From: Basidiobolus meristosporus CBS 931.73
Lineage: Eukaryota; Fungi; Basidiobolomycota
Direction: 5' to 3'
Length of the DNA: 64,000 nucleotides
Assembly: GCA_002104905.1 (NCBI GenBank)
Contig: MCFE01000020.1
Span: 1-64,000 of the forward strand
Shown: positions 8,928-49,700 of the stretch, piece by piece
Numbering within the stretch: the first letter of the stretch is position 1
How the letters are laid out: the number at the start of each line of letters is the position of its first letter
Position numbers and translations under genes: made by a program
Notes under the pieces: generated by a model
Told to the model about the DNA's origin: nothing
Databases searched by the model: none
Seen by the model: only the letters and a program-made list of their open reading frames with translations

Positions 8928-10268
8928 TTACAACAAGCCCCGTAGAGTACGGTACTTATTGTACTTAAGGATGGCGACGGTAACTGAGCATAGGAACATG
9001 CCTATCGCGACATACAGAATGGACCAATGATAGGTATAGTGTGGCGCAGTCATATCATACAGAGCGCCGGCAATGAAAGCCCCCAGACAGTCGCCAATAG
9101 CAGTGGAGGCATACAATGCACCAGCGACAGTAGCAAGGTTCTCGGTACCAAATAATAATGCCGTGACCACAGGGAATTGACTGGGGAAAGCACCGCCGAG
9201 AAAGCCGAACACTACCATGTAGATAATCAACGGTGCAACCGTAGTGGTGAACATCCACAGGAAAGAAAAAGCACCTGCCATAAAGAGGGAGATTCCAAGA
9301 ACATTCATACACCCGAGCTTATCGGCAATAAATCCGGTGCCAATACGGCCAGCAGCAGAAGCAGCATTTGCGCAAGCGACCAGCATAGCACCTTGATTGA
9401 CACTCAAACCAACGAACACTGCGTAAGATGGCATGTAGAAGAAGGGGACAAGGTAAGAGAAGCCGGTAAAAAGGCCAGTGCCAAAGAAGATCCAAAACCT
9501 GAGGGTTTTGAAAAAACTGTATCCTTGAGAATCCTTCTCGGTGTGTTTCTTGGGGAATATCCTTCTCTTCACAAGTAGTGAGGCAATGAGCAAGAAGAGA
9601 AGCGCGAACAAGGCCAACACCCGCAAAGCCCACCTGAACCCTAATTTGTCGATCAACACCTGGGTAATTGGACTGAGAATTAATCCACCGATTCCTGATC
9701 CTGCCACTGTCATACCGGTAGCAAGACCCCTCTTCTTGTTGAACCACTGGGGCGGAGCACTGATGGCTGGAGGGTAGCAGAGAGAGGCACCCATACCGTA
9801 GAGCACACCCTGAGTGAGGATGAGCTGCCATATTTGCGTACAAAAGGAGGCAATGATCAAACCGGCAACTAGAATGCAACAACCGATGGTTATGGTTGTT
9901 CTGTATCCAAAGCGATCAGCTAGGTTCCCCGTAATCAAGGTTGAGAAGGCCAAAACACCAGCGCCTATGGTGCCAATCAAGGATATAGTGGATGGACTGG
10001 AGCCTGCAAAGACTACATTTGTGTAATGTTCCTGAAAGATGCCAAATGTGGTTTGAATCCCGAATGCGACAACATGGATTAGGTGACCACCCAAAACCAC
10101 CAGCCAGCCACGACCGCCTTCCGGGTACGTTTCGTCTAATTCGACAACAGCCTTCTCATTATCTTGCGACTTCGTTACATCAGGTTCTACCACTAATGTA
10201 GAGGCAGATCTGCTATCGTTTGGATTTTGGAGGAACGTAAGGGAGTTCTGATTTTCGGATGAGTCCAT
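8928..10268 (-). CDS. MFS transporter, monocarboxylate porter (MCH/MCT) family
   Basis: Intronless ORF with about 12 hydrophobic segments and the motifs YPEGGRGWLVVLG, GNLADRFGYR, QWFNKKRGLATG and GFIADKLG. First ATG is at 10268; the track start at 10274 is GTG. Confidence 0.9.
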   Translation of the reverse strand: MDSSENQNSLTFLQNPNDSRSASTLVVEPDVTKSQDNEKAVVELDETYPEGGRGWLVVLGGHLIHVVAFGIQTTFGIFQEHYTNVVFAGSSPSTISLIGTIGAGVLAFSTLITGNLADRFGYRTTITIGCCILVAGLIIASFCTQIWQLILTQGVLYGMGASLCYPPAISAPPQWFNKKRGLATGMTVAGSGIGGLILSPITQVLIDKLGFRWALRVLALFALLFLLIASLLVKRRIFPKKHTEKDSQGYSFFKTLRFWIFFGTGLFTGFSYLVPFFYMPSYAVFVGLSVNQGAMLVACANAASAAGRIGTGFIADKLGCMNVLGISLFMAGAFSFLWMFTTTVAPLIIYMVVFGFLGGAFPSQFPVVTALLFGTENLATVAGALYASTAIGDCLGAFIAGALYDMTAPHYTYHWSILYVAIGMFLCSVTVAILKYNKYRTLRGLL

Positions 10269-10794
10269 ATACACTGATGCAAGTAAAAATAATAGGGTGC
10301 CGTTTTATTCTACAGACACATGGTACTTATATACTTTCGATATTCCTTCGAACTTCTACCTTATTTCGGTGAAGAAACTCTCCTTTTAGCTCGACAAGGT
10401 CTCCAGCGCAGTAACCATTTGAGTTAATGTTAATTTGGTGCTCTATTTAGAAATTACCAACTTGCTTGATTGATCGTTTTAGTCATTTCTATCATTCCGG
10501 TATTTCTATCCTGAATTCATTGGCCAATCATTGCTTCTTTTTCAGAGCTCATTTACCATTACAGGATGTAAACAACATACTAATTCGGAGTAATATGCCC
10601 CATTTTTTGGGCTGGCCAAATTGAGCAATATCTACTCAACAACCTAGCGTGTTGGTAGGTGGTGAAAGAGGGAGAGAGAGAGCAACGGAGAGAAGGTATC
10701 ATCCAAATAGTAGCTATTGAAATCCTCATATCGACTCCTGGGCGAATGATCCGAGTGCAGTATGTATCCTTCTCTCACTGATGGGCATCATGAG

Positions 10795-18993: not shown

Positions 18994-19339
18994 GTCATAA
19001 ATTTGTACTGAAAGTATAAATATACAATTTTCACTTGGTATCAGCCCTAGTACACCTTTCCCAAGTCCCCAGGTCAGCCTGCAACACACTACATTCATGA
19101 CCAAAATTGTATGTTCATAGGATAAGGGTTACTATTGGCCTATCACTGATCCATCATGCAGCGGAGCCTAATATCTTGTCTAACCTAAGCAGCATTTCAT
19201 GAAGCATGTTCGATCGGGGCTAGAATAATCTAATGTTGTTTACTTGATATTATTGTTTACTACTTCATTTGCGGTTCCATTAACCTTCAAGGAGCCTAAT
19301 AGCAATATATACTTTCTCCTTCACCGGAACGAATCCAGT

Positions 19340-20255
19340 ATGTCAGAGCAAACTGAACTAGACTTCTCCACACAGGACTTGGATCTTTATGAAGTGCTTC
19401 AGATCAGCAAGGAGGCTTCGCCCAGCGAGGTGAAGCGAGCCTATTATAAATTGGCTCTACTACACCACCCGGATAAAGCCCGAACAGATGTGGAGGCCTC
19501 GAAGCTGAAGTTTCAACAGATCGGGTTTGCTTACGCGGTACTAGGTGATGCCAAACGTAGGAGCCACTACGACCGAACTGGCTCTACAGAGGAGGGCTTG
19601 CTGGACGATGTGGAAGGCAGGGACTGGACCGCGTATTTCCAGGAATTATTCACCAGCATCTCCACGGAGAGCATTAAAGAGTTCTCGGAGAAATACAAAG
19701 GTACGTATGTTCGCAGTGGTCCTCCCCTTGTCTCTTTACTAACTCTGAGCCCTCCCCTCGCCGTGCGCAGGCTCCACCGAAGAATACGAGGATCTGATTT
19801 CGGCCTATAAAACTCACAAGGGAGATATGGACCTGATCTTGGGCTCGGTGATGCTCGCGGAGGTCGATGATGAGGATCGCCTACGTGAGATATTGCTCTC
19901 CGCCATCGAAAAAGGAGATATCGAAGCGTACAAGAAATTTACCAAGGTCGATAAAAAGGCTAAAGCACGCAGACAGCAGGCAGCCGCCAAGGAGGCGAAG
20001 GAGGCCGAGGAGTTGGCTCGGGAGCTCGGCTTGGATAAGAAGTTGAAACGGAAGAAGACAGAGTCTGACGAGGATTCCCTTCGTGCGCTGATCCAGCAGC
20101 GCAGCGGCAAACGAATGAACCAGCTGATGGACAGCCTGGAGGCCAAGTATGCCCCAAAGGAGACTAAAAAGGGGAAGAAGAGAAAAACCTCGGCCAAGGA
20201 GCCCTCGGAAGAGGAGTTCAAGGCACTGCAAGAGAAACTCTTTGCCCGCAAGTGA
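19340..20255 (+). CDS. DNAJC9: J-domain co-chaperone, DNAJC9-like (histone chaperone)
   Basis: ATG 19340, J domain with HPD motif (LLHHPDK), intron 19701-19770, then GSTEEYEDLISAY...GDMDLIL and a Lys/Glu-rich C-terminus with LRALIQQR. Confidence 0.85.
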
Positions 20256-20447
20256 TGAACGATCTTTATTTATGTACAGCTTGACTCATACTGACTTTCA
20301 AGAAATTCTTTTTATTAAACAAAAGCGCGTGATTGACTATCCAGCAAATAAAAACATCTATTCATCAAGGAATACTATACTGTACATGGAATTAAGATTG
20401 GGATTGGGGCTGGCTTCGGCTTTGGTTTACATCGCGAGGCCAACTCC

Positions 20448-21869
20448 TCAGACATCTTGTTGCAACGAATTGAATACTTTCCAAAAGAATACACCAGCGT
20501 CTCCCTTGGAGAATGAAATCGCTTTGGTCAGATACCCTGGCAAGATCTGCATCAGAGCCGCATCAGCCTGGTCCAGCATGGGCTCAAAGTGATACGAATC
20601 AGGGTCGTCATGCTCCAGCCGTAAAATATACCGAAAGGCTGCGGTGGTGCCAGGTTAGTGTTCATACTCACTATGCGTTTAGCATTCAAGCTGGCTTACC
20701 TCCATTGCGGCCGTTCTGCTCGCATTCCCAAGTGGTGACGTCTTTCTCGTGTTCCATGGATACGACCTGTAGGCCGGCGAGCTCCTTGTACAGTCCCAAG
20801 GATAACGTGAGATCGTCCTGCTTATGAACGGCGAGCTTGCGGTTCTCGGCTTGTAGTTGTTCAACTAGTGATAGAGGTTACGAAGCTATCCACGCGGGTG
20901 GTCAGTGTGAAGAAACTTACTTTGCTCCTTAAGCGACTGGATGTCCTCCTTTTGCTTTTGAATAAGGATCTCTTCCTTCGCGTTGGTCTTGGACTTCTTC
21001 AGTGTCGATATTTGCGCCTTCAGTTGGCTGACGAGATTGTCCGAAACTAGAACGGTGGTTAGTAAGCCTGCTGCCGCCAGAAATACCAATACACTCACAT
21101 TTGAAGCGGTCTTGTGCGTTTCTTTTGTATTCTCCAAAGTTCGTCTCAGCCTCCTGGATACCGATACGCTTCAAGTCCTCGTATCTTTCCAACAGGTCAC
21201 GGTACTCTCTCTTGACCTTAGGAAAAGGTTTAATTGGCTACTGCGTTGTGCCAGTGTAAAATTCGTGCTACTCACCTTTTGTAGATCCTCGGTATCTGCA
21301 AGAGAAGATTTACCAACTGCATCTGATCTATTGGTACGTTTTGCTCTGGGCTTGTCGAGCGTGGCGGCGCCGTCGCTGTCACCTTTGCTAGTCTCTCTTG
21401 CTCTTTTTCTAGGAGGAAGCGGGGAGTGATTGGCCGTATATACTACCGCGGTTTCCGGATCTCTGGGTGGCGAAACCAAAACAGAGAACTCCGGGGAATC
21501 TGGCACTGTGTCTCTCTTCAACGCACCAAAGCTAACGGATTTGCGGGATTGCTTCTTTTCCTGCCTAGATGGTTTCGGTGGGGTTGATTCCCTCGAGTCT
21601 TCATTTAACAAGATTTTCGCTTCGGCGCGTGAAACTAGTAGACGGTTACAAAGATGTGAGTTCTGCACGACACATGAAGGCGAAACGTGACGTATACTCA
21701 CTTCCTTTGGCAGGTTTGCTCTCCTCGGAAGGCTTTACTGCAAGAGGATTTAGTCAATTCGCCTGAGACAGTAATAGCACAAAGTTCACTGGGCGACACA
21801 CATACCTGAGGCGGACTTTTTTTTCTTTGCCGCGGTACTTCTTCTGGCTTTGTAGAAAGGGCGGGGCAT
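20448..21869 (-). CDS. CSM1: Monopolin subunit Csm1/Pcs1 (coiled coil plus RWD-like domain) with basic low-complexity N-terminus
   Basis: Spliced C-terminal exons read LGLYKELAGLQVVS...WECEQNGRNG-AFRYIL...ILPGYLTKAISFSKGDAGVFFWKVFNSL, which fits the Csm1 domain pattern. N-terminal splicing is uncertain. Confidence 0.75.
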
Positions 21870-22427
21870 TTTAACGTGAGGCGGGGGGAGTTGATCACGA
21901 TAGTGAAGAGGAAGAAAATATTGAGTTGGTCTGGAGTCAAAGAGGGGAATATCTCTTCTAGAACAGACAAGGAAATGTCGGGGGAAATAAGCAAATAGTT
22001 TAAAACAAACCACCAACGCTCATACAGAACACGAACAACGGGATAAAGAATTTTCGCGTATGGACACTATCCAACAAACAAGCCCTCAATATGTGACCAA
22101 TCAACACCAAAGCTCGTCTCATTGTTGTGATTCAGTATATTGTTAGAATCATGGGCCTGAGTCAGCATAAGGGCGATCGTTAATCCAGGTTGATATTCAG
22201 GTTAAGTTGAGGGGGAAGCTTCCATTAGGTTCTTATAGAGGTAGCCAATGGTGTAGTAAAACTAGGGAGTTGATAATCAAATCTTACATAGCAAAGGTCG
22301 TTGATGTACGAGGTCATTTGATTCTTCTGATTAGTTAAATATGGACGACATCTAGATAGATACCATCTCCGATCAGTTGTTACCATGCCCCCAACCATCT
22401 CGAGATGATTTAATTCGTGATTAAAAA

Positions 22428-22435
22428 TATAAATA
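22428..22435 (+). promoter_or_regulatory. TATA box of malate synthase copy 1
   Basis: TATAAATA starting 66 bp upstream of the ATG at 22494. Confidence 0.55.
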
Positions 22436-22493
22436 CTTCACTAGGTACGTGAAGGAAAGTTGCCAGACTTCTTAAATTTAAGAGTTTCATATT

Positions 22494-24131
22494 ATGTTCA
22501 AGACTACGATTGCCGGAATTTCTATCCTCAGCAAGGTCAAGCCAGCTCAGGCTGAGATCCTCACTGATGATGCTCTTAGATTTGTAGCCACCCTTCACCG
22601 TGCCTTCAACCCCACTCGCTTGGCCCTCCTCAAGCGTCGTGAAGAGCGTCAACGAGAGCTCGACAACGGTGTTCTCCCCGACTTCCTCCCCGAGACCGCA
22701 TACATCCGGAATGACCCCAACTGGAGAGCTGCTCGCCCAGCCCCTGGTCTCGAGGATCGTCGTGTGGAGATCACTGGCCCGGTCGACAGAAAGATGGTCA
22801 TCAACGCCTTGAACTCCGGTGCCAAGACCTTCATGGCCGACTTCGAGGACTCCTCAGCCCCCACCTGGGACACCGTCCTTGATGGTCAGATCAACATGCG
22901 GGATGCCCTTCGTCGCACCATCACCTTCACCGCCCCCAATGGCAAATACTACAAACTCCGCGATGACGGCAAGGTTGCCACCTTGCTCGTGCGGCCACGT
23001 GGATGGCACATGGAGGAGAAGCACTTGCTGATCGATGGCCAGCCTTGCTCGGCCTCCATCTTCGACTTTGCCTTGTACTTCTTCCACAACGCCCGCAAGT
23101 CCATTGAGATCGGAGCCGGGCCCTACTTCTACCTGCCCAAGATGGAGTCCCATCTCGAGGCCAGGCTCTGGAACGATGTGTTCAATGCCGCCCAGGACAC
23201 CCTCAACATCCCCCGCGGAACCATCCGTGGCACCGTGTTGATTGAGACCATCCTCGCCTCCTTCGAGATGGACGAGATCATCTACGAGCTCCGTGACCAC
23301 TCCTCCGGACTCAACTGCGGCCGCTGGGACTACATCTTCTCCTTCATCAAGAAGCTTCGCCAGCACCAAAAGTTCGTCCTGCCTGACCGTTCTGACGTCA
23401 CCATGACCTCACCATTCATGGACGCCTATGTCCGCTTGTTGATCAAGACCTGCCACAAGCGTGGAGTGCACGCCATGGGAGGCATGGCCGCCAACATCCC
23501 CATCAAGAACAACCCGCAGGCCAACGAGGCTGCCATGCAAAAGGTTCGCAATGACAAGCTTCGTGAGGTGAAGGCCGGCCACGATGGTACCTGGGTTGCC
23601 CACCCCGACCTCGTCAAGATCGCCACCGGAATCTTCAACGAGCACATGGCCACCCCCAACCAGATCCACATCCGTCGTGATGATGTCGAGGTCTCTGCCG
23701 CCGACCTTCTCAACAACAACATCGAGGGAGGCAGGATCACCGAGACCGGTATCCGCAACAACATCTCCGTTGGCCTCGCCTACATCGAAGCCTGGCTCCG
23801 TGGTCTGGGATGTGTCCCCATCCACAACCTCATGGAGGATGCCGCCACCGCCGAGATCTCTCGCTCCCAGTTGTGGCAATGGGCCAAGCACCAGGTGAAG
23901 ACCGCCGAAGGCAAGCAAGTCACCCCACAATGGCTCTTGCAGCTGCTGAACGAGGAGACCGACTCGCTGAAGAAGCAACTCGGCAACAAGTATGCCAGCT
24001 ACAAGTACGATCTTGCCAAGAAGTACATGGCTGGACAAGTGTCAGGCAAGAACGAGGACTATGCTGACTTCTTGACCACCTTGATCTACGACGAGATCAC
24101 CACCCTTCCTTCCACCAAATCCAGACTCTAA
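22494..24131 (+). CDS. MLS1: Malate synthase A, peroxisomal (copy 1, C-terminus SRL)
   Basis: 545-aa intronless ORF with [40 protein letters not shown] and [12 protein letters not shown]; PTS1 -SRL. Confidence 0.98.
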
Positions 24132-24447
24132 ATCTCCAGTCCACCAAGATGCACATCGTATATTTCTCAATGTCCCACATACTTCAATTCGCATTCCCAA
24201 GGGGTCACCACCACGAAAAGTAAATAAAACCCACGTCCCAAAAACGGAAATTCCCAAACGGGCCGGAGGTGAATTGAACCGAATTTATTCATGAAGTATC
24301 CAACATTGACACGCCACCCTGGTAAGCTGGGTTTCTCGACTCGATGCGATGTAAAGAAGGTGGGCTTTCATTCCCGTCGATAAAAGTCACGGTTAAAATC
24401 ATATAAATTAAGTATATTACATTTCAAATGAAAAATCGCTGGTTTTG

Positions 24448-27355
24448 TTAATACCGTGGTGGTCTAAAGCCTCCCTTGCTCCCACCTCGTTGGGGTGGGC
24501 GGTCGTACGGGCCGCCTCTACCACGGCCGCTCTGGAAACGAGGCGCTCTATTGTTGTCGTTCATCGGACCACCTCGGCCTCGTGGGTCAAAGCCCCTGGA
24601 GTTGTTCCCAGCATGAGGGGGTGGCGGTGGTGGCGGTGAAGAGTTTTCATTGAACCTTCTCTTCCCATATGGCGGCGCCCCTTGGTCTTGATATCCACCT
24701 CTCATAGGCGGTCCTTGGTCCGGATAGCCATGTGAAGGCCCGGTAGGGTGTCGATTAAGTCGTGGGTCTTGGGGGGGACCATTGTCGTTGTAACCTCTTT
24801 GAGGGCCACCATCATTAAACGATCCTCGAGGGCCTTGTGGGGGTGGAGGCGGTCTTGAGTCGAATCCACCCCGAGGTCCAGAAGGAGGGCGAGCACCATC
24901 AAATTGACCTCGAGGTCCACCCATAGAGCTATTCGACGGAGGACGTGACGAAAAGTCACCAGGTGGACCTTGTCGTGAAGGTGGGAAAGAGGGTTGCCCA
25001 GCTCCGGAGGGAGGTCTTATGCCGGGTGGCATATTATTGGATGACCTATGTTGCGAATGGAATGAGCCTCCATGACCACCCATCTGACCAGGAGGGCCAT
25101 TCGGTCTAAACGGATAATCGTTTGAAGGTGGACCACGATCGTGCATGGGTCCATTGCGAGACTTGGCCATGCCGAAGCCAGGTAAAGGTCCATTTCTATC
25201 ATGAGCATTTCCAAGGCCAGGCGGGGCAAAGTTATCTTTCTTGTTGGCTGAGCCCTGGTAGTTTTTGTTGTGGTTGAGCATGGACAGGCCGGGGACGTGA
25301 CTGTCTGTAAGGGTGGAGTTGATGTTAGTACAAATATGATAAAATTGGGAATCAAGATCACATCAGATAACGAACCTTCTTCCCAATGTTGCTCGCTAGC
25401 ATTAAGGCCATCGGTTTTCTCGTCAGTTTTTTCGGAGGGGTCACCCGGCCTTTCACGGGTCCAAAATTTGGTCGAGTGGTCGTTGGAGCCTGAGGCGATA
25501 ATATGGCCAACTGGATGCCAATCCAATGACCAGATATTTTGCTCATGAGCTCCATCGATATTAGCAACAGCTTGGTCATTTCTTTCAACCAGATGACCAC
25601 GGTTAGTAAACAGCTGCCGATGTAACTCCAATAATAAAACTCACCCTATAAGCCAATATGTGAGTGAACCTTCAGAACCACCAGTAGCCAGTAGCCGTTC
25701 GTGGATTGGGTGCCATGAAAGTGCTTTACTCGAGTTAGTACAAGAACGAGGACTAAATACGGCACAATTTCACTCACAAGAAAGCTCCTCCTTTCCGCTT
25801 CTAAATGTCTGAAGTTCCTTCATCATTCGAATGTCATAGACCTTCATCATTTGATCTCGAGCAACTGTGGCGAGCCAATTTCCGTTCTTGTTCCATTCTA
25901 TACCACTTACGGTGGCCTTGTGACCGTGTCTAGCGCAATATGTTAGTTAGTGGCTTCAGTTGACCGAACAACGTACGGAAAGCTTACAGTGTAGTCAAGT
26001 TTCGCCCGGATTTAGGATCCCACAACTTCACCAGGTTATCTTTCGACCCAGAGGCAAGAAGCGCCTTAGATGGGTGCCAGTCCACGCATTTGACATCCCA
26101 ACCGTGACCTAAAATATTCCATGGATAAGGAAACGTAGCACATTTACCGATAGGGTCACAATTAGGCTGCACCTGTTAAAATTCTTTCCTCTATGCCTTC
26201 GTTGAAATTCCAAATTTTGATGGTTCCATCATCCGAACACGTAGCAAATTTGACATCAGTAGGTGAAAATCTACAAGACAAACTTGAGTCATTAATTCAA
26301 GTGGCGCCGAAGTGACCAACCATTACTGACGCTATGTCACGGATTGCCTCCTTGTGGCCTTGGAATACTTTGAGATTGTTCATATTAGACTGCCAATACT
26401 TGATAACGCCACTGTGATCTGCGGTTACCATCCAATTGTCGTTATGGGTCCACTCCATGGCTCGCACAGCAGTGTCATGAGCCTAACAGAGTACTGATAA
26501 GTAACCAAAAATGTGACTTCAGGAAACCTTGACTAACCTGAAGAATCGTTTCAAAATTGAAAGTCAGCCCGTTCCAAAGGGTAAACTCTCCACTAGTGGA
26601 GCCGGTAATTAAACGTCTACCTTCCGGGGTCCACTGGAAGGGCAAATAATATCAACGACTAATTCATGACCTGAGTCTCGAAAATTGCAGCGCTAGCTTA
26701 CCTTAACAACATTGACTGGGCAACGAATCTTGTTCGTTGAAGTATGCACGAACTTGGTGGCGCCGGAATCCACGGGATTATTTAAGTGAAAAGAAGTGGG
26801 CAATAGCTATTACGTAGCAGACCAGGTATGATTTTACGACCAAGCAGATAGAAGTCCCAAAAAAAACTTTATTATTAGATGGATTGCATATATACAAAAC
26901 GAATCAAGAATTACCGGTGCGTGTGCAACCTGGCAATATCAGAGAAGTCAAAAACTTAGTCAAAACAGGCACTTACGTTTACGATGAAGTTGGGATTGGG
27001 TCTAAGAATAGGCAGATCTCTATGATCTCTAAGAGTTGGACGAAGCTAGCAAAAAATAAAAGCTGTTAGTGATCAACGCAGTCTTATCAATATTCCCATA
27101 CGTGACGAGAGGGACACCATAACGAGGGCAAACAAATAGACAATAATTTTATCCTACCTCTGTTCCCAATGCGATCGAGGAGTTATAGTCGACGGTACGT
27201 CGCTGGATGGCTTTACGTAGACTTTTACCATCAAAAGTCATACGATTTGAATAGCCCATCCCTCCACCACCACCCATACCGCCTCCAGGATTATGACCTC
27301 CTCCTCCGCTTCCGCTGCTACCTCCACCTCTTCCGCCACGATCGTAGGCAGGCAT
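24448..27355 (-). CDS. PFS2: Polyadenylation factor subunit Pfs2/WDR33 (WD40) with Gly/Pro/Arg-rich tail
   Basis: ATG 27355; [71 protein letters not shown] and [31 protein letters not shown]; multiple GT-AG introns. Confidence 0.95.
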
Positions 27356-27793
27356 TTTCAATAAGTCAACTTCGTATGTGCTGTAAAAGGTATTTTGTAG
27401 ATGTATATGTAACTCGTATGACGCGAAAACAAATATTTAAAAAAGAGTCAGTCTAATGAATCATCAGCACATTAAATTCATTCGAAGTGGTGATCTCAAA
27501 TTTTTCTTCAGTGGGCAAAACTGATACGTATACAGTATGTACTGATAGATATATAATCATTTCCTAATACAGCATGTAATGGGTAAAGATCCTTGGTTGT
27601 ATATTTAAGTGAGATTTGAAACCACGTTCAATGCTATTTGAGGAGGGAGGGGTGACCTGGTTCATCCTAATTGGATACCGCCAATAGTTTTAATGTGTTT
27701 ATTAACAAGCAGAGACTGCCGTATTTTTGTGGCGATATTGAATGCTGATGCAGAGTGTCATGTTTACAGGATACTAAATGTTCGGTATAATAC

Positions 27794-29431
27794 TTAGAGT
27801 CTGGGTTTGCTGGAAGGGAGGGTGGTGATCTCGTCGTAGATCAAGGTGGTCAAGAAGTCAGCATAGTCCTCGTTCTTGCCTGACACTTGTCCAGCCATGT
27901 ACTTCTTGGCAAGGTCGTACTTGTAGCTGGCATACTTGTTGCCGAGTTGCTTCTTCAGCGAGTCGGTCTCCTCGTTCAGCAGCTGCAAGAGCCATTGTGG
28001 GGTGACTTGCTTGCCTTCGGCAGTCTTCACCTGGTGCTTGGCCCATTGCCACAACTGGGAGCGAGAGATCTCGGCGGTGGCGGCATCCTCCATGAGGTTG
28101 TGGATGGGGACACATCCCAGACCACGGAGCCAGGCTTCGATGTAGGCGAGGCCAACGGAGATGTTGTTGCGGATACCGGTCTCGGTGATCCTGCCTCCCT
28201 CGATGTTGTTGTTGAGAAGGTCGGCGGCAGAGACCTCGACATCATCACGACGGATGTGGATCTGGTTGGGGGTGGCCATGTGCTCGTTGAAGATTCCGGT
28301 GGCGATCTTGACGAGGTCGGGGTGGGCAACCCAGGTACCATCGTGGCCGGCCTTCACCTCACGAAGCTTGTCGTTGCGAACCTTTTGCATGGCAGCCTCG
28401 TTGGCCTGCGGGTTGTTCTTGATGGGGATGTTGGCGGCCATGCCTCCCATGGCGTGCACTCCACGCTTGTGGCAGGTCTTGATCAACAAGCGGACATAGG
28501 CGTCCATGAATGGTGAGGTCATGGTGACGTCAGAACGGTCAGGCAGGACGAACTTTTGGTGCTGGCGAAGCTTCTTGATGAAGGAGAAGATGTAGTCCCA
28601 GCGGCCGCAGTTGAGTCCGGAGGAGTGGTCACGGAGCTCGTAGATGATCTCGTCCATCTCGAAGGAGGCGAGGATGGTCTCAATCAACACGGTGCCACGG
28701 ATGGTTCCGCGGGGGATGTTGAGGGTGTCCTGGGCGGCATTGAACACATCGTTCCAGAGCCTGGCCTCGAGATGGGACTCCATCTTGGGCAGGTAGAAGT
28801 AGGGCCCGGCTCCGATCTCAATGGACTTGCGGGCGTTGTGGAAGAAGTACAAGGCAAAGTCGAAGATGGAGGCCGAGCAAGGCTGGCCATCGATCAGCAA
28901 GTGCTTCTCCTCCATGTGCCATCCACGTGGCCGCACGAGCAAGGTGGCAACCTTGCCGTCATCGCGGAGTTTGTAGTATTTGCCATTGGGGGCGGTGAAG
29001 GTGATGGTGCGACGAAGGGCATCCCGCATGTTGATCTGACCATCAAGGACGGTGTCCCAGGTGGGGGCTGAGGAGTCCTCGAAGTCGGCCATGAAGGTCT
29101 TGGCACCGGAGTTCAAGGCGTTGATGACCATCTTTCTGTCGACCGGGCCAGTGATCTCCACACGACGATCCTCGAGACCAGGGGCTGGGCGAGCAGCTCT
29201 CCAGTTGGGGTCGTTCCGGATGTATGCGGTCTCGGGGAGGAAGTCGGGGAGAACACCGTTGTCGAGCTCTCGTTGACGCTCTTCACGACGCTTGAGGAGG
29301 GCCAAGCGAGTGGGGTTGAAGGCACGGTGAAGGGTGGCTACAAATCTAAGAGCATCATCAGTGAGGATCTCAGCTTGGGCTGGCTTGACCTTGCTAAGGA
29401 TGGCGACACCTTGAACCGAAGTTTTAGACAT
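27794..29431 (-). CDS. MLS1: Malate synthase A (copy 2, C-terminus PRL)
   Basis: 545-aa ORF whose core is near-identical to copy 1; N-terminus [14 protein letters not shown]; TATTTAA about 56 bp upstream. Confidence 0.98.
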
Positions 29432-30025
29432 ATTACTTTAGGAAACGAAGTACGAGAATGGGTAGGAAAAAGTGCTGACGCTAGAATTAAATACATAGCA
29501 GAGTAGGACAAATCGATGCTGCTTCCAATGAAACTGCCACTCACCACACAATATCAAGTTGCCTGTAATAGACATTTGCTGGCATCTAATGTCATATTTC
29601 AAGCACCTTTGCTATGCCAAAAATTGGCCGATTTCTAAATACGACTTGTAGATGAAGATGGTATCGATTGTAGATTGATTTACCTCTTATAAATGGGTAG
29701 CTATCGTCGGGATATTACCGCAGTGTTAGCAGCCGTTTTTGTGGGGTTCGTTGCAATTTATTCAAATACTACAATATACATCTACTGCTTATGTTAGACC
29801 AGATTATCATTACGAATCAATCTGCCTAGGTAGATTAATATACACTTGGTTGCACTCTCAAGGAATTCCTGGTATCTATCAATGAAGAATTGGAATCATG
29901 AAAATACTTGTACTTCGACAATGGTTTAATTAATAATATGCTAGATACATGCGACAGATAATTTTGATTACATTTTGGGTGAGAGGAAATGCAGATATAA
30001 TGCAATAAAGTGATGAAAAAGAAGC

Positions 30026-31663
30026 TTAAAGCTTGGATTTGTTGGAAGGAAGGGTGGTGATCTCGTCGTAGATCAAGGTGGTCAAGAAGTCGGCATAGTC
30101 CTCGTTCTTGCCTGACACCTGTCCAGCCATGTACTTCTTGGCAAGGTCGTACTTGTAGCTGGCATACTTGTTGCCGAGTTGCTTCTTCAGCGAGTCGGTC
30201 TCCTCGTTCAGCAGCTGCAAGAGCCATTGTGGGGTGACTTGCTTGCCTTCGGCGGTCTTCACCTGGTGCTTGGCCCATTGCCACAACTGGGAGCGAGAGA
30301 TCTCGGCGGTGGCGGCATCCTCCATGAGGTTGTGGATGGGGACACATCCCAGACCACGGAGCCAGGCTTCGATGTAGGCGAGGCCAACGGAGATGTTGTT
30401 GCGGATACCGGTCTCGGTGATCCTGCCTCCCTCGATGTTGTTGTTGAGAAGGTCGGCGGCAGAGACCTCGACATCATCACGACGGATGTGGATCTGGTTG
30501 GGGGTGGCCATGTGCTCGTTGAAGATTCCGGTGGCGATCTTGACGAGGTCGGGGTGGGCAACCCAGGTACCATCGTGGCCGGCCTTCACCTCACGAAGCT
30601 TGTCGTTGCGAACCTTTTGCATGGCAGCCTCGTTGGCCTGCGGGTTGTTCTTGATGGGGATGTTGGCGGCCATGCCTCCCATGGCGTGCACTCCACGCTT
30701 GTGGCAGGTCTTGATCAACAAGCGGACATAGGCGTCCATGAATGGTGAGGTCATGGTGACGTCAGAACGGTCAGGCAGGACGAACTTTTGGTGCTGGCGA
30801 AGCTTCTTGATGAAGGAGAAGATGTAGTCCCAGCGGCCGCAGTTGAGTCCGGAGGAGTGGTCACGGAGCTCGTAGATGATCTCGTCCATCTCGAAGGAGG
30901 CGAGGATGGTCTCAATCAACACGGTGCCACGGATGGTTCCGCGGGGGATGTTGAGGGTGTCCTGGGCGGCATTGAACACATCGTTCCAGAGCCTGGCCTC
31001 GAGATGGGACTCCATCTTGGGCAGGTAGAAGTAGGGCCCGGCTCCGATCTCAATGGACTTGCGGGCGTTGTGGAAGAAGTACAAGGCAAAGTCGAAGATG
31101 GAGGCCGAGCAAGGCTGGCCATCGATCAGCAAGTGCTTCTCCTCCATGTGCCATCCACGTGGCCGCACGAGCAAGGTGGCAACCTTGCCGTCATCGCGGA
31201 GTTTGTAGTATTTGCCATTGGGGGCGGTGAAGGTGATGGTGCGACGAAGGGCATCCCGCATGTTGATCTGACCATCAAGGACGGTGTCCCAGGTGGGGGC
31301 TGAGGAGTCCTCGAAGTCGGCCATGAAGGTCTTGGCACCGGAGTTCAAGGCGTTGATGACCATCTTTCTGTCGACCGGGCCAGTGATCTCCACACGACGA
31401 TCCTCGAGACCAGGGGCTGGGCGAGCAGCTCTCCAGTTGGGGTCGTTCCGGATGTATGCAGTCTCGGGGAGGAAGTCGGGGAGAACACCGTTGTCGAGCT
31501 CTCGTTGACGCTCTTCACGACGCTTGAGGAGGGCCAAGCGAGTGGGGTTGAAGGCACGGTGAAGGGTGGCTACAAATCTAAGAGCATCATCAGTGAGGAT
31601 CTCAGCCTGAGCTGGCCTGACCTTGCTTAAGATTGATACACCAGAAACTGCAGTTTTGAACAT
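30026..31663 (-). CDS. MLS1: Malate synthase A (copy 3, C-terminus SKL)
   Basis: ATG at 31663 gives 545 aa ([17 protein letters not shown]); TATAAATA at 31715-31722 on the minus strand. Confidence 0.98.
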
Positions 31664-31862
31664 TGTTATGAATCTTCTTTTCGAACCAGAAAGGCTTTCG
31701 CGCACCAGCGACTATATTTATATCAAAATCAATGCGAGCAAAATAAGTACGGAGCTAGCGTCATCATGGTAGGCATTGACATTAGAGGAAGGTTGTATTG
31801 ATTTGTCTCGGCAATTTCGGGTATGACAAGCATTCCTTACCAACCATTGGGAAAATTTCTTG

Positions 31863-32451
31863 GATAATCAAGCGTTGAAATTTGTGACAATATGTATAAC
31901 CGATTATCTTGAAGTGGCGTTGCATGAAATAATGTTTAATGATGGGTAATCGCGGTGTGATATAATTTTTCCCCTCAATCAGACGTTATCCATCGGACGA
32001 CAACGATTATCATACCCAGATTATCGTTAGTGGGTAACTATGAACTAGAACTCAAGAGGTTTGCACTGGTTTGCCTGGAGATGATAATCAGTGTACATTG
32101 TTTAGAGCAGTTAGTCATTCAATATCCTGTAATAATTGTAGCACCCGAGGATTAAGTCATTACCAACTTTACACATTCGGTAAAACTACCAAGTGATTTC
32201 TTATTTACCAGGGCGAAACTGTTTGGGAGCGTTGATTTTTTGGGCGGACTCATCCTGTATTACTCCAAGATTGCTAGTTGCCTATGCATTGGTGGATCAA
32301 CTCCAATTAGTACAAGCCATGAGATGAACCTACATGTTAGATCCGAGGAATGGGAAGTGAGAACTCCAACTTAAATGACAGCGCCACTCCGAAAGAGGCT
32401 CTTCGAGGTTTCTTCCGTTGATATCCCTTAAGCCACCCAAAATAGATTATC
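31863..32451. promoter_or_regulatory. Cluster of six GATAATC/GATTATC motifs in the divergent promoter of malate synthase copies 3 and 4
   Basis: Exact 7-mers at 31863, 31902, 32005, 32019, 32083 and 32445; single copies also at 22272 (upstream of copy 1) and 29802 (upstream of copy 2). Confidence 0.5.
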
Positions 32452-33003
32452 TAGGATAACCCGAAATCGTGTGACAGCCTTACTTGCCGAAGTTCATGTT
32501 GCTGTTTCGTGTCCCTTTCCATATACAGCACACTCAGATCACCATATCATGACCAAGCGGCGGTCAATCGTGTTCTTTGTTACTGTTCCTAACCGTACTC
32601 ATTAGTGGAATTATGCAAATTTGATTATGTCGAACTGATACTATTGCCGATAAATTTCTCACACTTTCCCTTGAATCCGCTCCAATGATATTTCACCAAG
32701 ATTTGCTGCGTAGAGAAATCGAAACATTCTGCTAATTAGTAGAAATTCAATATTCCTGGTTGTGTTTTGCACAGCATTCAGGGTCAGTTGAGGACATCAG
32801 TGCAATGTGTCGTTCGAGTGAATTTGATTGTTAATACATGTGACCGGCCTCAAATGGCTGCTGAAACATTCGGTAGTTGATGTAAATTTGATGGCATGTG
32901 ATATCACCGAAAAAAGAAGTCAAGTTACAAAGGCGCGAGGCAAGATATAAAGGCGACATCTAGCTTCGAGTCACTACATCATTTCATTTTCACAACCAGC
33001 AAT

Positions 33004-34642
33004 ATGTACAACACTTCAGTCTCTGGTATTTCTTTCTTGGCTCCTGTCAAGCCAGCCCAAGCTGAGATCCTCACTGATGATGCTATTAGATTTGTAGCCA
33101 CCCTTCATCGCGCCTTCAATCCTACTCGTTTATCTCTCCTCAAGCGTCGTGAAGAGCGTCAACGAGAGCTCGACAACGGTGTTCTCCCCGACTTCCTCCC
33201 CGAGACTGCATACATCCGGAACGACCCCAACTGGAGAGCTGCTCGCCCAGCCCCTGGTCTCGAGGATCGTCGTGTGGAGATCACTGGCCCGGTCGACAGA
33301 AAGATGGTCATCAACGCCTTGAACTCCGGTGCCAAGACCTTCATGGCCGACTTCGAGGACTCCTCAGCCCCCACCTGGGACACCGTCCTTGATGGTCAGA
33401 TCAACATGCGGGATGCCCTTCGTCGCACCATCACCTTCACCGCCCCCAATGGCAAATACTACAAACTCCGCGATGACGGCAAGGTTGCCACCCTTGCTCG
33501 TGCGGCCACGTGGATGGCACATGGAGGAGAAGCACTTGCTGATCGATGGCCAGCCTTGCTCGGCCTCCATCTTCGACTTTGCCTTGTACTTCTTCCACAA
33601 CGCCCGCAAGTCCATTGAGATCGGAGCCGGGCCCTACTTCTACCTGCCCAAGATGGAGTCCCATCTCGAGGCCAGGCTCTGGAACGATGTGTTCAATGCC
33701 GCCCAGGACACCCTCAACATCCCCCGCGGAACCATCCGTGGCACCGTGTTGATTGAGACCATCCTCGCCTCCTTCGAGATGGACGAGATCATCTACGAGC
33801 TCCGTGACCACTCCTCCGGACTCAACTGCGGCCGCTGGGACTACATCTTCTCCTTCATCAAGAAGCTTCGCCAGCACCAAAAGTTCGTCCTGCCTGACCG
33901 TTCTGACGTCACCATGACCTCACCATTCATGGACGCCTATGTCCGCTTGTTGATCAAGACCTGTCACAAGCGTGGAGTGCACGCCATGGGAGGCATGGCC
34001 GCCAACATCCCCATCAAGAACAACCCGCAGGCCAACGAGGCTGCCATGCAAAAGGTTCGCAACGACAAGCTTCGTGAGGTGAAGGCCGGCCACGATGGTA
34101 CCTGGGTTGCCCACCCCGACCTCGTCAAGATCGCCACCGGAATCTTCAACGAGCACATGGCCACCCCCAACCAGATCCACATCCGTCGTGATGATGTCGA
34201 GGTCTCTGCCGCCGACCTTCTCAACAACAACATCGAGGGAGGCAGGATCACCGAGACCGGTATCCGCAACAACATCTCCGTTGGCCTCGCCTACATCGAA
34301 GCCTGGCTCCGTGGTCTGGGATGTGTCCCCATCCACAACCTCATGGAGGATGCCGCCACCGCCGAGATCTCTCGCTCCCAGTTGTGGCAATGGGCCAAGC
34401 ACCAGGTGAAGACTGCCGAAGGCAAGCAAGTCACCCCACAATGGCTCTTGCAGCTGCTGAACGAGGAGACCGACTCGCTGAAGAAGCAATTCGGCAACAA
34501 GTATGCCAGCTACAAGTACGACCTTGCCAAGAAGTACATGGCTGGACAAGTGTCAGGCAAGAACGAGGACTATGCTGACTTCTTGACCACCTTGATCTAC
34601 GACGAGATCACCACAGTTTCCAGTGATAAGTCAAGATTGTAA
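33004..34642 (+). pseudogene. MLS1: Malate synthase A copy 4 with a +1 frameshift (pseudogene or sequencing error); C-terminus SRL
   Basis: GTTGCCACCCTTGCTC at 33484-33499 versus GTTGCCACCTTGCTC in the other three copies splits the gene into ORFs 33004..33618 and 33329..34642. It is otherwise intact, with TATAAAG at 32946. Confidence 0.8.
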
Positions 34643-34812
34643 ATTATACACAGTCTCGAATCTTTCTCACTCAATTGTAAAATTATCATGTAATAAGTTT
34701 AACTCACCATAAGTGATATTCTAATGTAAACAGTTGGAATATGGTACAAAAATGATATCTTCTGCATAAAAAAACTATTCACACACCATCCACTTAATTT
34801 GCTAATGCAGAT

Positions 34813-35833
34813 CTATTTACTGGTTTGTAGACCTACAATGGGGTTGTACGGCTTTGACTTGGATTTCTTGGATTTGTTAACTGAATTTATTGGCCCGGTT
34901 GATGCTTCGAATATGCCAGCAAGGATTGGACATTCAGTCGGTTTTACTAAAGTAACGGAAGTAGTAAGCATCATTGGCTGCTTTAAGTTCATACGATGTT
35001 AACGAGTGAGTCCCGATATTAGAAACATGCGTGATTAAATTGGCGAGTAGGGACAAGTGTATGATAGCTTTAGGAGTATATTGCTGCATTTATCTCCTTT
35101 TCCGTTCCATGAGTAGCGGATGATGCTGGTGAGTGGTTGTAAAATAGGTATGAGACAATCAAGTTACTACACTTTCTGGGAAATTATCTAACCAATCTGA
35201 CAATAACTCTTTACACCACATGATGTCTCTGGCATGAAAATCAGAGTGGCCTTGGGGCACCAAGTGGTTACGTGCAGTTCAGGATAAATGACTAGATAGC
35301 GTCATGTCGTATCGTTAATAATGAATAAAATGATACGCCGAAGTTTCTTGACCACAGCCACCAAAGCGATCTGGTGTGAACAGCATCTGTTTGCGGGTAG
35401 AAGTCCACCTACACTTTCCCTTTTTCGTCAGACAGCAATAGAGGTTAACGACAGTAACACAGAAAAAGGTGGTCAGTGGTCAAACCCTCAGGCTCTCTAA
35501 GCTCCTTTGAACCTATGAAGAACCGTGTTAGAACGAGCTCCTATCAGAAGGTTCTCTTTACTCACCTCGTACAATCTGCGGAAAGTTACAGCATTTCTGT
35601 GCTGATTTCAATTCTCATGAAACAATAACTCCCGCGTTTTGCTTCCGAACAGAAATCTTTGCTGGGTAGCGTTCTATGAATGAAAACTAAGGTTTTCGGC
35701 TTGTCATGCATACTAGATGTCTGCAATCGGTTCCTCGGTATAAGTTTGCTTGGTGCTCGTTAACCTTCTTCCGGGTAAATGCCTGGAGGTCCAGTTCAGT
35801 TGACGTAGCCTCTTTACTACCTGCCGAAATCAT
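34813..35833 (-). other. Possible small multi-exon gene of unknown function
   Basis: Protein-like short open segments flanked by GTATGC/GTGAGT donors and YAG acceptors; no fully consistent gene model obtained. Confidence 0.2.
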
Positions 35834-36196: not shown

Positions 36197-37231
36197 ATGG
36201 CCTCGAAACAGCAAGAGAACGTATTTTTATTTGTACCCAATATCATCGGTAACGTCTGTCTGGTTGTTGCTTTTAGAGCCTGTCACTGATGTTCTGCTTT
36301 CAGGCTACTCCCGCATTGTATTAGCTGCGATATCTCTCTACTACATGCCAGATGCACCAGTATTCTGCGTCGCACTATACTCATTATCCTGCTTGCTTGA
36401 TGCTGTTGACGGTCAAGCAGCTAGATATTTTGGCCAATGTAACTTTACTGAGAGTTGATTATGGTACGCAGCCAACTCATCATGGCTTTACTCGTTTGTA
36501 TATAGGTAGTAAGTTTGGAGCTGTACTTGACATGGTGACTGACCGGTAATGAGTTTACTTGACTTGTGAAAACCCCGATATTCCCTACTGACTGTTATGG
36601 CAGCTGTACTACAACCTGCCTGATGTGCTACTTGGCCCAAGTTTATCCCAAATGGTCTCTCTTGTTTCAATTCCTCATTTCCTTGGATTTGAGTAGTCAT
36701 TACATGCATATGTATAGGTACCGCACTTTTTCTATTTGGCACGTTGAGAATATAAGCTTATCATACCTTCCATAGCACCCTTTCCTCAGGTGTATCCTCT
36801 CACAAAGTGATCTCCAAGAAGCAAAACTTCATTCTTCGGGCCTATTATTCCAACAACGTAAGTTCAATCAAATCCATTCGTGAGAGGCCTTCACTTCCAA
36901 GCCACTAAACATCCCACCCAAGCTTGTTCTTTTCTCCTTCTGTGCAGGCAATGAATTGTTTTTCATCTTCCTCTACATCCTGGCGTTTTACACTGGCCCC
37001 GAAGGTGAAGCACTTGCTCAAGCCACGAGTTACATCCAATACTGTACTAATACCTCTGCAGTCTTTAATGTCGCAGGTGTTTCCGTCTCCTTAATTCATA
37101 TACTGGCCTTTTTGACTTTTCCCATCTGTGCCATCAAACAAATCATCAACTGTATTCAATTCGGTGGGGCTGCAAAGACCCTCGCTAAAATTGATCTAGA
37201 AGAGCGCCAGAAAGCTGCTAAGCAGCAATGA
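36197..37231 (+). CDS. PIS1: CDP-diacylglycerol-inositol 3-phosphatidyltransferase (PI synthase)
   Basis: Spliced MASKQQENVFLFVPNIIGYSR...LLDAVDGQAARYFGQCSKFGAVLDMVTDRCTT...LDLSSHYMHMY contains the CDP-alcohol phosphotransferase motif; 5 introns. Confidence 0.95.
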
Positions 37232-46794: not shown

Positions 46795-49700
46795 TTAATT
46801 CGTCTTCACCAAGAACTCCAATTCGTTCTTCTTCAGGAACTCCTCTATTTTCTCGTCAGATTGATGCGCCTTGGGCAACACCTTGCTCCATTCCAATCCA
46901 GACTTCTGGAATTTTTCGGTCAATGCGTCGGCTCCAATGTCGGAGGAAAGGCGCTTGAGATATTCACCAAGCACCTTGTTCGAAGGTGGGTTGATACCGG
47001 GGGAAGGTAGAAGAAGCTCGAGAATCTTGGGGAGATCCTCCATTTCGATGGGTGTTCCGGCCATCATGGCTCCCATATGGCTGTAGGCTTGTGGAACATC
47101 GATGGCAATGTCCTCCAAGAACTCCATAACCTCGACGATACCAGCAACATATGATTCACGGCTGATTACCTCTTCAGAAGATAACTTCTTGAACAGCTTG
47201 ATAACTGCATCAATATCCTTCTGCTTCTTGTCCAGAGCTTCGTTAATAAACTCGGACACAACCAAGGAATGGAACTCGTCAGAGCCAAGCTCCTTGATAC
47301 AAGTGATGACCTCGGGAACGTCTTGGACGGACAAGTACTCCTCGACCATAGCCTTGACCTTGGGCTCGGCTTGCTCCTTAGTGAGCTTGGCTTCCTCGGC
47401 CTTGGTCTCTTCAGGAACAGGTACGCTTCTAGGGCGAAGGTTCAAGGGTTTACGCTCAAACGGCTTGTCCTCCTTACGTGGGCTCTCAGAAGACATGAGG
47501 GCACTGAACATGTTGCCAGAAGGTGGCTTGGGCTTGGGCTCTTCCTTACCCTTTGCTTCGGATGATTTCCATCCCTTGCTGCCACCGCCTAGAGCACCGA
47601 AAACACCTCCACCAGGGCCAAGACTGACATTAGCACCGCTCTTGCTACGAGTCAAGTTGCCAAAGGCAGTCAGATCCCCCGTCTTGCGAGAAGAAGGAGC
47701 GTTTCCAACAGTGTTCCAACCATCCGGACCTTGGCCAGGAGGTCCACGTCTCTCACGGCGCTCGGAATTGGCGCGGGAAAGCTGTTGGTTGATGGGAGGC
47801 AATCTGCCGCCGGAGCTGGCAGTCTTCTTGAGCATCTCTGCGTTCTCCTCCTTCTGCTTCTGAGCATCTTGGTGAATTTGAGAGATGGTCTTGGGACCAG
47901 CAACCTCACGACGGGGAACCCACTTGTTGGAACGTAGATCAATCACATCCAACAACATGAAGCGAATTCTGCTGTTCAACTTCTTGTTGACGGACATCTC
48001 CTTCATGCGTTGGAAGTAAGCGTCCATGTAATTCTTCGCCTCCTTGCGGTCAAGTTGCTTGCCTACAGTAGTCATCAGCTTGCACAAACTTTCGGTTTCT
48101 TCCTCCTCGGGGGTTTGGACATTGCTCAACAGTCTCTTGATGCATTCGTGCATGATGCGTTCGGTCAACATTTGCAATTTGAAGAGCTCACCAATGAATG
48201 CCATCAAACCAAGACCTCTACGCTTAGCCTTAGCGGCGATGTAGTACTCATCAGTCAAGAGAGCATTGGGGTTATCCAAAGAGGAACCGTCAGGGAGATT
48301 GACCTTCCAACCCTTTTCGAACTCTTCTTGGCATCTGCTAAGAAGATATTTACGGAAGAGGGCGCCACCAGCGACAGGCTTGTTGTCCTTGCCTCTGATA
48401 CCCTCATCCATAACATCGGGGCTGATCTTGTCCATCATCTTTCTGCAAAGAGATGCGTAGACCATAATGAAGTTGGGCTCATCGGTAGCCTTTTCGAAGA
48501 TCAGCTGGATAATGGTTTGAAGAGAAGAGCCATTCTTCTCCTCGATCGATTTGTCACCAAGCTCGATGATCTTATCGGAAATAGACTCGAACTTTTCAAG
48601 GGTCAACTTGTTCAAAAGACCATTAACCTTGCGGCAAAGGACTTCCTTAGCATCCTTCTCCTCTTCAGCATTGTTTTTGGTAGGAACCCAACGTTCTTTG
48701 GAGAATGCAAGAGGAACAACCTCGTCAAGAGGGATGGTTGGTCCACCTTGTTGTTGGCGTTCACCCTTACCCTTGTGGCGGCCGGAGCGAGAACCGCGGC
48801 CCTCACGGCTGCCCATACCAGGCATGTTGTTGCTACCGCTAGCAGATCTACCACCCATGGAGCCACGGTTGAATCCACGACCTCCAGCACCTTGGGAAGC
48901 AGCAAACCTTTCTTCGCTGGTCTTAGGAGTATGCTTAAAGGATCCCATATCTCCTGGGAATGGAGAACCCTTAGGTCCTCCTCCACCACGTCCCCCACGT
49001 CTGCCGCCGCTGCTAGCAGAACGCTTGTCATCACGAGCATTCTCCTCAATACCGAGTGATTCAAGAGTAGGCATGTTGTTGGGTCTATCTTTGCAGACAT
49101 CCTTGAATTGCAACAAGAAGGAGGCATCGTACTTGAGAGTACCTGATTCTACCAAGCTCTTGGGTGCAGTGATATTAGGAGGATAAGTGACTTGGTTAAG
49201 TTGCTCTGGATTGAGAGTACTGGCATTATTAATAACAGGGTCAGCAGGCTTCTCTTCTTTCTTTTCAGACTTGGCTTCAGGCTGGGCAGTAGCATCTGGT
49301 TTGTCCTCTTTGGGAGCTTCTGCCTTAGCCTCGGAAGTTTCAATTGGCTTGGGCTCTTCCTTTGCTTCAGCTTCAGGAACCACGGCCTCCTTCTTCTCCT
49401 CAACCGATTCAGGCTCCTCAGTGATTTCCTGAGTGCCAGTAGTAGTATCAGGTACTTGGGCCTCTTCCTCCTTGGCCGCCTCCGGAACACTTTCTTCCTC
49501 GACTTGAGGTGTCTCATCGCTCACAGCCTCCTTTACCTCAGAGACTTCAGGAGTGGGCTCTGCTTTCTCTTGGGGAACCTCCGCGGCAGACTCATCCTTC
49601 TTATCACTTTCCTGAACATCAACTACAGGCTCAACCTCCTTCTCAGCAACGGGAACAATGGCTTCATTTTCGTTGGTCTCCACCTTTTCTTCAACCGAAA

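Follow-up and report, generated by a model that had tools for sequence, protein, structure and literature searches.

Near-identical coding cores in an old malate synthase gene array of Basidiobolus meristosporus: support for concerted evolution and a T-to-C shift in the homogenised tract

Organisation and identity of the malate synthase array

The region analysed here, referred to throughout as the window, comprises the opening 64 kb of contig MCFE01000020.1 from the fungus Basidiobolus meristosporus CBS 931.73 (assembly GCA_002104905.1), and it carries an array of four intronless malate synthase (MLS) genes, c1 to c4, within 12 kb. The presence of these four genes had been proposed in a sequence-only reading of the window and was borne out, as all four copies were located and all are malate synthase A, with the correction that c4 is not an open frame in the assembly, a 1-nt insertion (33491) shifting its frame. 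Copies c1 and c2 are inverted relative to each other, c2 and c3 stand in tandem and c3 and c4 are divergent, giving the array both inverted and direct repeats. Its elements are as follows.

22494..24131, plus strand: MLS copy c1, 545 aa with the tail -SRL, from open reading frame (ORF), repeats and Pfam; P0121; homogenised core about 22551-24103
25017..27355, minus strand: WD40-repeat gene between the inverted copies c1 and c2, from called genes; also present between the counterpart copies c1' and c2' at a second locus, L001
27794..29431, minus strand: MLS copy c2, 545 aa with the tail -PRL, from ORF, repeats and Pfam; P0126; core about 27822-29374
29432..30025, minus strand: c2/c3 spacer of 594 nt, made up of the promoter of c2 and the 3' flank of c3, with one GATAATC at 29802
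30026..31663, minus strand: MLS copy c3, 545 aa with the tail -SKL, from ORF, repeats and Pfam; P0124; core about 30054-31606
31664..33003, no strand assigned: divergent c3/c4 promoter region of 1340 nt, with TATA near -59 and -58 and six GATAATC
33004..34642, plus strand: MLS copy c4 with the tail -SRL, its frame shifted by an extra C at 33491; P0125; core about 33136-34614

All three Pfam domains of the enzyme (MS_N, MS_TIM-barrel and MS_C) are present in c1-c3. Copy c1 scored 813.6 bits against the NCBIfam malate synthase A equivalog TIGR01344 (cut-off 594.5), covering profile positions 1-510 of 511, and gave full-length alignments with two solved structures of malate synthase A, 3CUX (E 2e-195) and 3CUZ (E 2e-165), with the conserved blocks intact relative to 3cux_A; active-site conservation was judged by these blocks. 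The Basidiobolus copies share full-length alignment and conserved blocks with 3CUX and 3CUZ and differ from them in having an extra short variable N-terminus and a C-terminal tail that resembles the peroxisomal targeting signal type 1 (PTS1), with the tripeptides SRL in c1, PRL in c2, SKL in c3 and SRL in c4. The four copies are thus predicted from their sequence to be genes for peroxisome-targeted malate synthase A.

Beyond the genus, the closest relatives of these genes are malate synthases of fungi (69-76% identity), mostly from Mucoromycota (~75%), and MLS is therefore regarded as a native fungal gene. A bacterial origin of the intronless copies was considered and ruled out, as the nearest relatives belong to Mucoromycota and other early-diverging fungi. 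Relics of further MLS copies were sought by tblastn in the window and at two further loci described below (L003 and L002), and none were found there.

Homogenised cores with abrupt boundaries

Identity among the copies in 50-nt bins is 98-100% throughout the coding core, and outside the core it falls, in the space of a single bin around the start and stop codons, to what shuffled sequence gives (~0.43-0.45). In the 1473 nt of codons 46-536 there are 9 substitution sites and 1 indel among the four copies, in agreement with the roughly ten variable sites in about 1.47 kb of core given in the earlier reading, and its count of 7 substitutions plus 1 indel between c1 and c4 was reproduced exactly. 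The last divergent site at the 5' end lies at nucleotide 57 of the coding sequence (CDS), in codon 19, in c1-c3 and at nucleotide 132, in codon 44, in c4, while 3' divergence begins at nucleotides 1611-1614, corresponding to the last 8-9 codons. Alignment bins and site positions together confirm the picture of abrupt boundaries, with divergence confined to the first ~20 codons (44 in c4), the last ~8 codons and the flanks.

The contrast between core and termini anticipated in the earlier reading extends to synonymous divergence (dS), which in comparisons among c1-c4 is 0.006-0.019 in the core and ~0.9-1.4 in the first 19 codons. The significance of the identity tracts was likewise upheld by permutation of polymorphic sites, with p <= 4e-4 for the identity run in all six pairs. 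CDS sites 204 and 1410 show all four gametes among c1-c4, which, together with the separate 5' tract boundary of c4, indicates several exchanges with different end points. In the flanks of the copies identity equals that of shuffled sequence, and neither poly-A tracts nor common untranslated-region (UTR) sequence were seen in the flank alignment.

A second array as an internal clock

The left part of the array has a paralogous counterpart on contig MCFE01000209.1 (L001), which carries, in order, DnaJ, Csm1, c1' (plus strand), a WD40 gene (minus strand) and c2' (minus strand), the contig stopping inside c2'. The corresponding stretch of the window is as follows.

19154..28895, plus strand: stretch colinear with L001:6710-16455 (MCFE01000209.1) at 82.5% identity, containing DnaJ, Csm1, c1, the WD40 gene and c2

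The positional counterparts c1/c1' and c2/c2' were set by the colinear 9.9-kb alignment of the window with L001. The noncoding flanks of c1 and c1' have diverged by K 0.21-0.26, and in its first 19 codons c1 shares 94.7% identity with c1', compared with 72% for c1 and c2. Because L001 is colinear with the window and the flanks and 5' ends of c1 and c1' match, the order c1, WD40 gene, c2 is older than the segmental duplication that separates the two loci.

The cores follow a different history from their flanks and ends. Core dS is 0.27-0.29 between the arrays, as against the low values within the window given above and 0.04 within L001. In a maximum-likelihood tree of the shared core, c1' and c2' are joined with support 100/99, apart from c1-c4, and forcing c1 with c1' or c2 with c2' costs 151 log-likelihood units, with approximately unbiased (AU) test p-values of 2e-6 and 9e-7. 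Exchange between the two arrays was not seen, their divergence being uniform over the length of the gene (2-9 differences in each 90 nt).

The earlier proposal that an old amplification has been maintained in concerted evolution by gene conversion is borne out by these results, namely the diverged flanks, the clock provided by L001, the comparison of within-array with between-array dS and the AU test. As the array can be dated by the segmental duplication that came after it, gene conversion is demonstrated and not just conjectured, and the sequence comparisons support concerted evolution through ectopic gene conversion as the process that keeps the MLS cores near-identical.

Independent contigs, copy number and gene models

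Independent data were available as short-read contigs of three runs (X1, X2 and X3), which are contigs and not spanning reads. The X1 and X2 contigs reproduce every junction between unique sequence and core in 29300-35200 (29360-30072, 31587-33075 and 34590 onward), the 5' junction of c2 being covered by the contig at 29360-30072 without differences, and several core stretches are also matched without differences. Every listed core variant in the X1 and X2 contigs corresponds to the L001 state. Depth in these two runs is ~100-125 in unique sequence, ~290-335 in core identical to the window and ~260-430 in L001-type core; because the core contig depths exceed the unique depth, both core types are apparently multi-copy in the sample, and the second array probably holds more than its two assembled copies.

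At position 32909, contigs of two runs carry one extra A in an A-run relative to the assembly (ccgaaaaaagaag), the contig over the c3/c4 spacer being 1490 nt long. The deposited assembly therefore has residual homopolymer errors, and the unique sequence checked contains one indel error in 2.8 kb. In c4, CC has become CCC at 33491, and this additional, frame-shifting C lies outside the short-read contig coverage. Copy c4 may be a pseudogene or the insertion may be an assembly error, and the latter is a fair possibility given the one indel error in the 2.8 kb checked. Two of the deposited gene models are artefactual: the model of c4 (P0125) bypasses the frameshift by means of a fictitious intron, at the cost of 14 residues among which is the RPRGWH block, and the model of c3 (P0124) ends early at its 3' end with a foreign tail.

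Base composition inside the converted tract

The share of G and C among third codon bases (GC3) of the core is 0.79-0.80 for copies in the window and 0.83-0.85 for L001. Elsewhere it is 0.53 in m3, a third-locus MLS gene of the same assembly described below, 0.53-0.55 in genes of Basidiobolus ranarum and 0.49-0.55 in the majority of the window's other long ORFs. The difference is found within single genes, in which GC3 is 0.46 (60/130) in the ends and 0.80 (391/491) in the core (p 5e-13), and it takes the form of a gradient, with GC3 rising from ~0.5 to ~0.8 over the first 100 codons; m3 shows no such rise.

At fourfold degenerate (4-fold) sites, the pyrimidine share is 0.83 in the ends and 0.82 in the core, and the fraction C/(C+T) is 0.45 in the ends versus 0.77 in the core (p 6e-6, or p 8e-9 with 2-fold sites included). 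Genes with the same pyrimidine preference in which T stands above C are B. ranarum r2, with a C/(C+T) of 0.37, and the eIF4G gene of the window, with 0.38. The latter is an eIF4G-like gene at 46795-51090 on the minus strand, with MIF4G, MA3 and eIF_4G1 matches, a 4-fold G of 0.06 and T above C, and it was used as a codon control. Among changes fixed between the arrays, 48 are from weak to strong bases (W>S) and 15 from strong to weak (S>W), compared with 4 and 13 among unfixed changes (p 1e-4).

Upstream regions and expression

The upstream regions of c1-c4 have no alignable homology, and a TATA box is found at -58 to -66 in three of the four. When these regions were compared for shared promoter words, only GATAATC stood out. 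This motif occurs 13 times in the window against 9.3 expected, which is no overall enrichment, and 8 of the 13 sites fall in the 2.6 kb of MLS upstream spacers (4% of the window), a count to be read with the motif having been chosen post hoc. The eight sites are distributed as six in the c3/c4 region (31863-32451), one at 29802 and one at 22272. Two of the sites form a pair 14 nt apart (32005 and 32019), and the c1 site (22272) is conserved together with its surroundings at L001:9784. GATAATC, which contains a GATA core, is thus a candidate element and a post hoc lead, not a finding.

The contigs of X3 total 27 Mb and cover only genic parts, from which X3 is a probable transcriptome. Its depth is 171-214 in L001-type MLS, 82 in window-type core and 9-24 in the c3-specific 3' end, and it reproduces the c3-specific sites 1545 and 1572 along with at least 49 nt of c3 3' UTR. 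A further X3 contig of 412 nt matches 34914-35200 of the window and beyond without differences, within the spacer between c4 and the following CDP-alcohol phosphatidyltransferase gene, where there is no called gene. The view of the array as one enzyme under four independent promoters accordingly stands in part: the upstream regions are indeed unalignable, but they have TATA and GATAATC in common, transcripts were seen only for c3 and for window-type copies as a pool, and c4 is possibly frameshifted.

A third locus, B. ranarum and gene number

A single-copy third paralogous MLS locus, L003 on contig MCFE01000041.1, is new here. Its gene m3 (P0002; protein 91% identical) is saturated in dS relative to the array copies and is followed by genes for a CDP-alcohol phosphatidyltransferase, TFIIB, PHAF1 and RhoGAP, the same neighbours that lie 3' of c4 in the window. 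Because of these shared downstream neighbours, c4 occupies a position in common with L003, and the locus matching L003 in B. ranarum is L002. The first of the shared neighbours is placed in the window as follows.

36197..37231, plus strand: CDP-alcohol phosphatidyltransferase gene 3' of c4; the same neighbour is found after m3 (L003) and after B. ranarum r1 (L002)

With this locus, the assembly holds at least 7 MLS genes (4 + 2 + 1). Over 19154-44600 of the window, the left half resembles L001 (DnaJ, Csm1, MLS, WD40, MLS) at a K of ~0.2-0.3, and the right half resembles L003 (MLS, CDP-alcohol phosphatidyltransferase, TFIIB, PHAF1, RhoGAP) at saturation. The existence of three paralogous regions points to two rounds of large-scale duplication, and gene and genome duplication are already known in Basidiobolus (PMC3281927).

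A further B. ranarum contig, JASJQH010004840.1 (L004), is 1559 bp long and consists of an MLS core only (CDS nucleotides 25-1583), 84.5% identical to c1; it ends near where the B. meristosporus copies begin to differ. This contig may be a multi-copy core collapsed by short-read assembly, which would place an array also in B. ranarum.

Discussion

We consider it highly probable that an old four-gene MLS array underwent DNA-level gene conversion of its cores, was later duplicated and was then homogenised separately at each locus, with a T-to-C shift most likely produced by conversion. Repeated DNA-level conversion between inverted and direct copies would keep the coding cores nearly identical. 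Conversion tracts would stop at the flanks, all homology there having been lost long ago, and the outermost codons would therefore have escaped conversion and diverged, although each tail retains a tripeptide resembling PTS1. A later duplication would have carried the entire array, or its left half at the least, to the second locus, after which each array would have been homogenised on its own. GC-biased repair of conversion heteroduplexes would have shifted synonymous T to C, atop a gene-wide preference for pyrimidine-ending codons. The outcome would be several near-identical enzyme genes behind sequence-unrelated promoters, which could serve dosage, differential regulation or both.

Several points weigh against this reconstruction. 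The depth of window-type core is ~3x that of the flanks and not 4x, depth being no copy count (it suggests 3-4), and the core variants were compared at the level of contigs. For the second array the assembly stops within c2', short of the right half, and the argument from age is therefore direct for c1 and c2 only. The evidence for expression comes from one run, X3, whose RNA nature is deduced from its coverage. As regards base composition, the outgroups that polarise the substitutions are saturated (dS > 1.2), which weakens the W>S test, and at 4-fold sites C rises (0.63) but G stays at 0.10, although plain GC-biased conversion predicts a rise in both. In view of the low G, the bias is taken to act jointly with selection that disfavours codons ending in G, or to be selection that conversion has made more efficient.

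Near-identity of the cores could also be a sign of youth, if the copies were very recent ORF-sized duplications such as cDNA-mediated retrocopies inserted at four places, and the intronless state of all copies and the bounding of identity almost exactly by the ORF would fit such an origin. It is nevertheless extremely improbable, as identity stops inside the CDS and not at transcript ends, with the first 19 and last 8 codons homologous but saturated (dS ~1), as c1 and c2 already have matching places in L001, a duplicate separated from the window by 0.2-0.3 substitutions per site in flanks and cores alike, and as the flank alignment is free of the poly-A tracts and common UTR sequence mentioned above. 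That assembly or polishing homogenised copies which are in truth more divergent or fewer, through mis-placed reads, is very unlikely: the short-read contigs match all junctions exactly and several core stretches without differences, the variants listed show the L001-type alternative only, and the c3-specific variants recur in the third run, X3, against which stand at least one homopolymer indel error (32909) in 2.8 kb of unique sequence, the suspicious 1-nt insertion in c4 and the threefold core depth. Purifying selection on the protein and on codon usage alone, with no exchange of sequence, could draw on the high conservation of the enzyme, which is 75% identical to Mucoromycota proteins, but has next to no chance of being correct. 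The same core has a dS of 0.28 between the arrays and is saturated relative to m3, so that synonymous sites are free to change, and the dS of 0.006-0.019 within the array is beyond what constraint produces. Engineered cassettes, in which one ORF is set behind different promoters, were also considered and were ruled out by the anciently diverged ends, the record of a wild-type JGI strain and the diverged duplicate locus.

The T-to-C shift in the homogenised tract is most likely the result of GC-biased conversion. For the rise in GC3, and for this only, there is a possible though somewhat unlikely alternative in translational selection, which in a gene family of high expression would favour codons ending in C and would be helped by the pooling of copies through conversion. 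Such selection agrees with the avoidance of G-ending and favouring of C-ending 4-fold codons and with the transcription of the MLS family, and in theory selection acts more effectively on duplicates that undergo gene conversion (reviewed in PMC3924837). However, the unconverted ends and B. ranarum r2 share the pyrimidine preference yet have T at or above C, and eIF4G, the one further gene with strong bias among those available, prefers T. Furthermore, the last 8 codons, which are not subject to a translational ramp, have a GC3 of 0.5 next to a core at 0.8 (binomial p 1.4e-4).

No description of the Basidiobolus MLS array was found in the literature searched on Basidiobolus, malate synthase and gene conversion. 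The earlier statement that no such array was known thus stands for the array itself, but not for the pattern of a homogenised CDS, which is described for yeast. In yeast duplicates under concerted evolution, the rule is a homogenised coding region with flanks diverged beyond recognition (PMC3924837). Paralogues of Saccharomyces cerevisiae from whole-genome duplication, including ribosomal-protein and TEF-type pairs, show the same CDS-confined homogenisation with different regulatory regions. Basidiobolus differs from them in having a four-gene local array, both inverted and direct, plus a second array, and in its internal clock, its glyoxylate-cycle enzyme and its early-diverging fungal host. 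GC enrichment of converted families, for example mammalian histones and Hsp70, is attributed to Galtier 2003 as cited in PMC3924837, and is also reported in PMC2720389. The mammalian histone and Hsp70 genes resemble the MLS array in the rise of GC3 in frequently converted paralogues and in the W>S excess among fixed changes, whereas in Basidiobolus the shift lies within one gene, is limited to the tract, has a 5' gradient, is almost purely T to C and occurs in a non-Dikarya fungus.

Taken together, these comparisons make the MLS array a well-supported case, clean and datable, of a well-known process, in a gene family and a lineage that are both new for it, and not a new kind of system. Its value is that of a natural experiment of unusual clarity on concerted evolution, in which the unconverted ends of the same genes provide an internal control separating codon selection from GC bias linked to conversion. 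Gene counts and gene trees of the B. meristosporus genome are distorted by conversion, and the array also draws attention to the expansion, as yet unexplained, of an enzyme that handles glyoxylate in a fungus associated with the gut.

The S. cerevisiae genes MLS1 and DAL7 are a malate synthase pair with peroxisomal targeting signals, one carbon-responsive and the other nitrogen-responsive through GATA factors. They resemble the Basidiobolus genes in that more than one malate synthase A gene with peroxisomal signals stands behind different promoters. The two yeast genes are diverged and not homogenised, unlike the Basidiobolus cores, which are at least 99.5% identical and belong to a family of at least 7 genes in the assembly. 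A speculative extension, which we think is unlikely to be correct, is that the two homogenised MLS arrays and the single-copy paralogue (~7-9 genes) are an adaptation to substrates of the niche that generate glyoxylate, with purine or urate breakdown from reptile and amphibian excreta as a candidate. The copies would then respond to different signals, including nitrogen control by GATA factors, and the genes would record GC-biased conversion at single-gene resolution in an early-diverging fungus.

Other features of the window

The remainder of the window includes a gene for an XMAP215/Dis1-type TOG protein of 1936 aa in a single exon (1101-6911, minus strand), an MFS transporter gene (8928-10274, minus strand) and, at the right-hand end, a 625-aa ORF with no Pfam match (62119-63996, plus strand).

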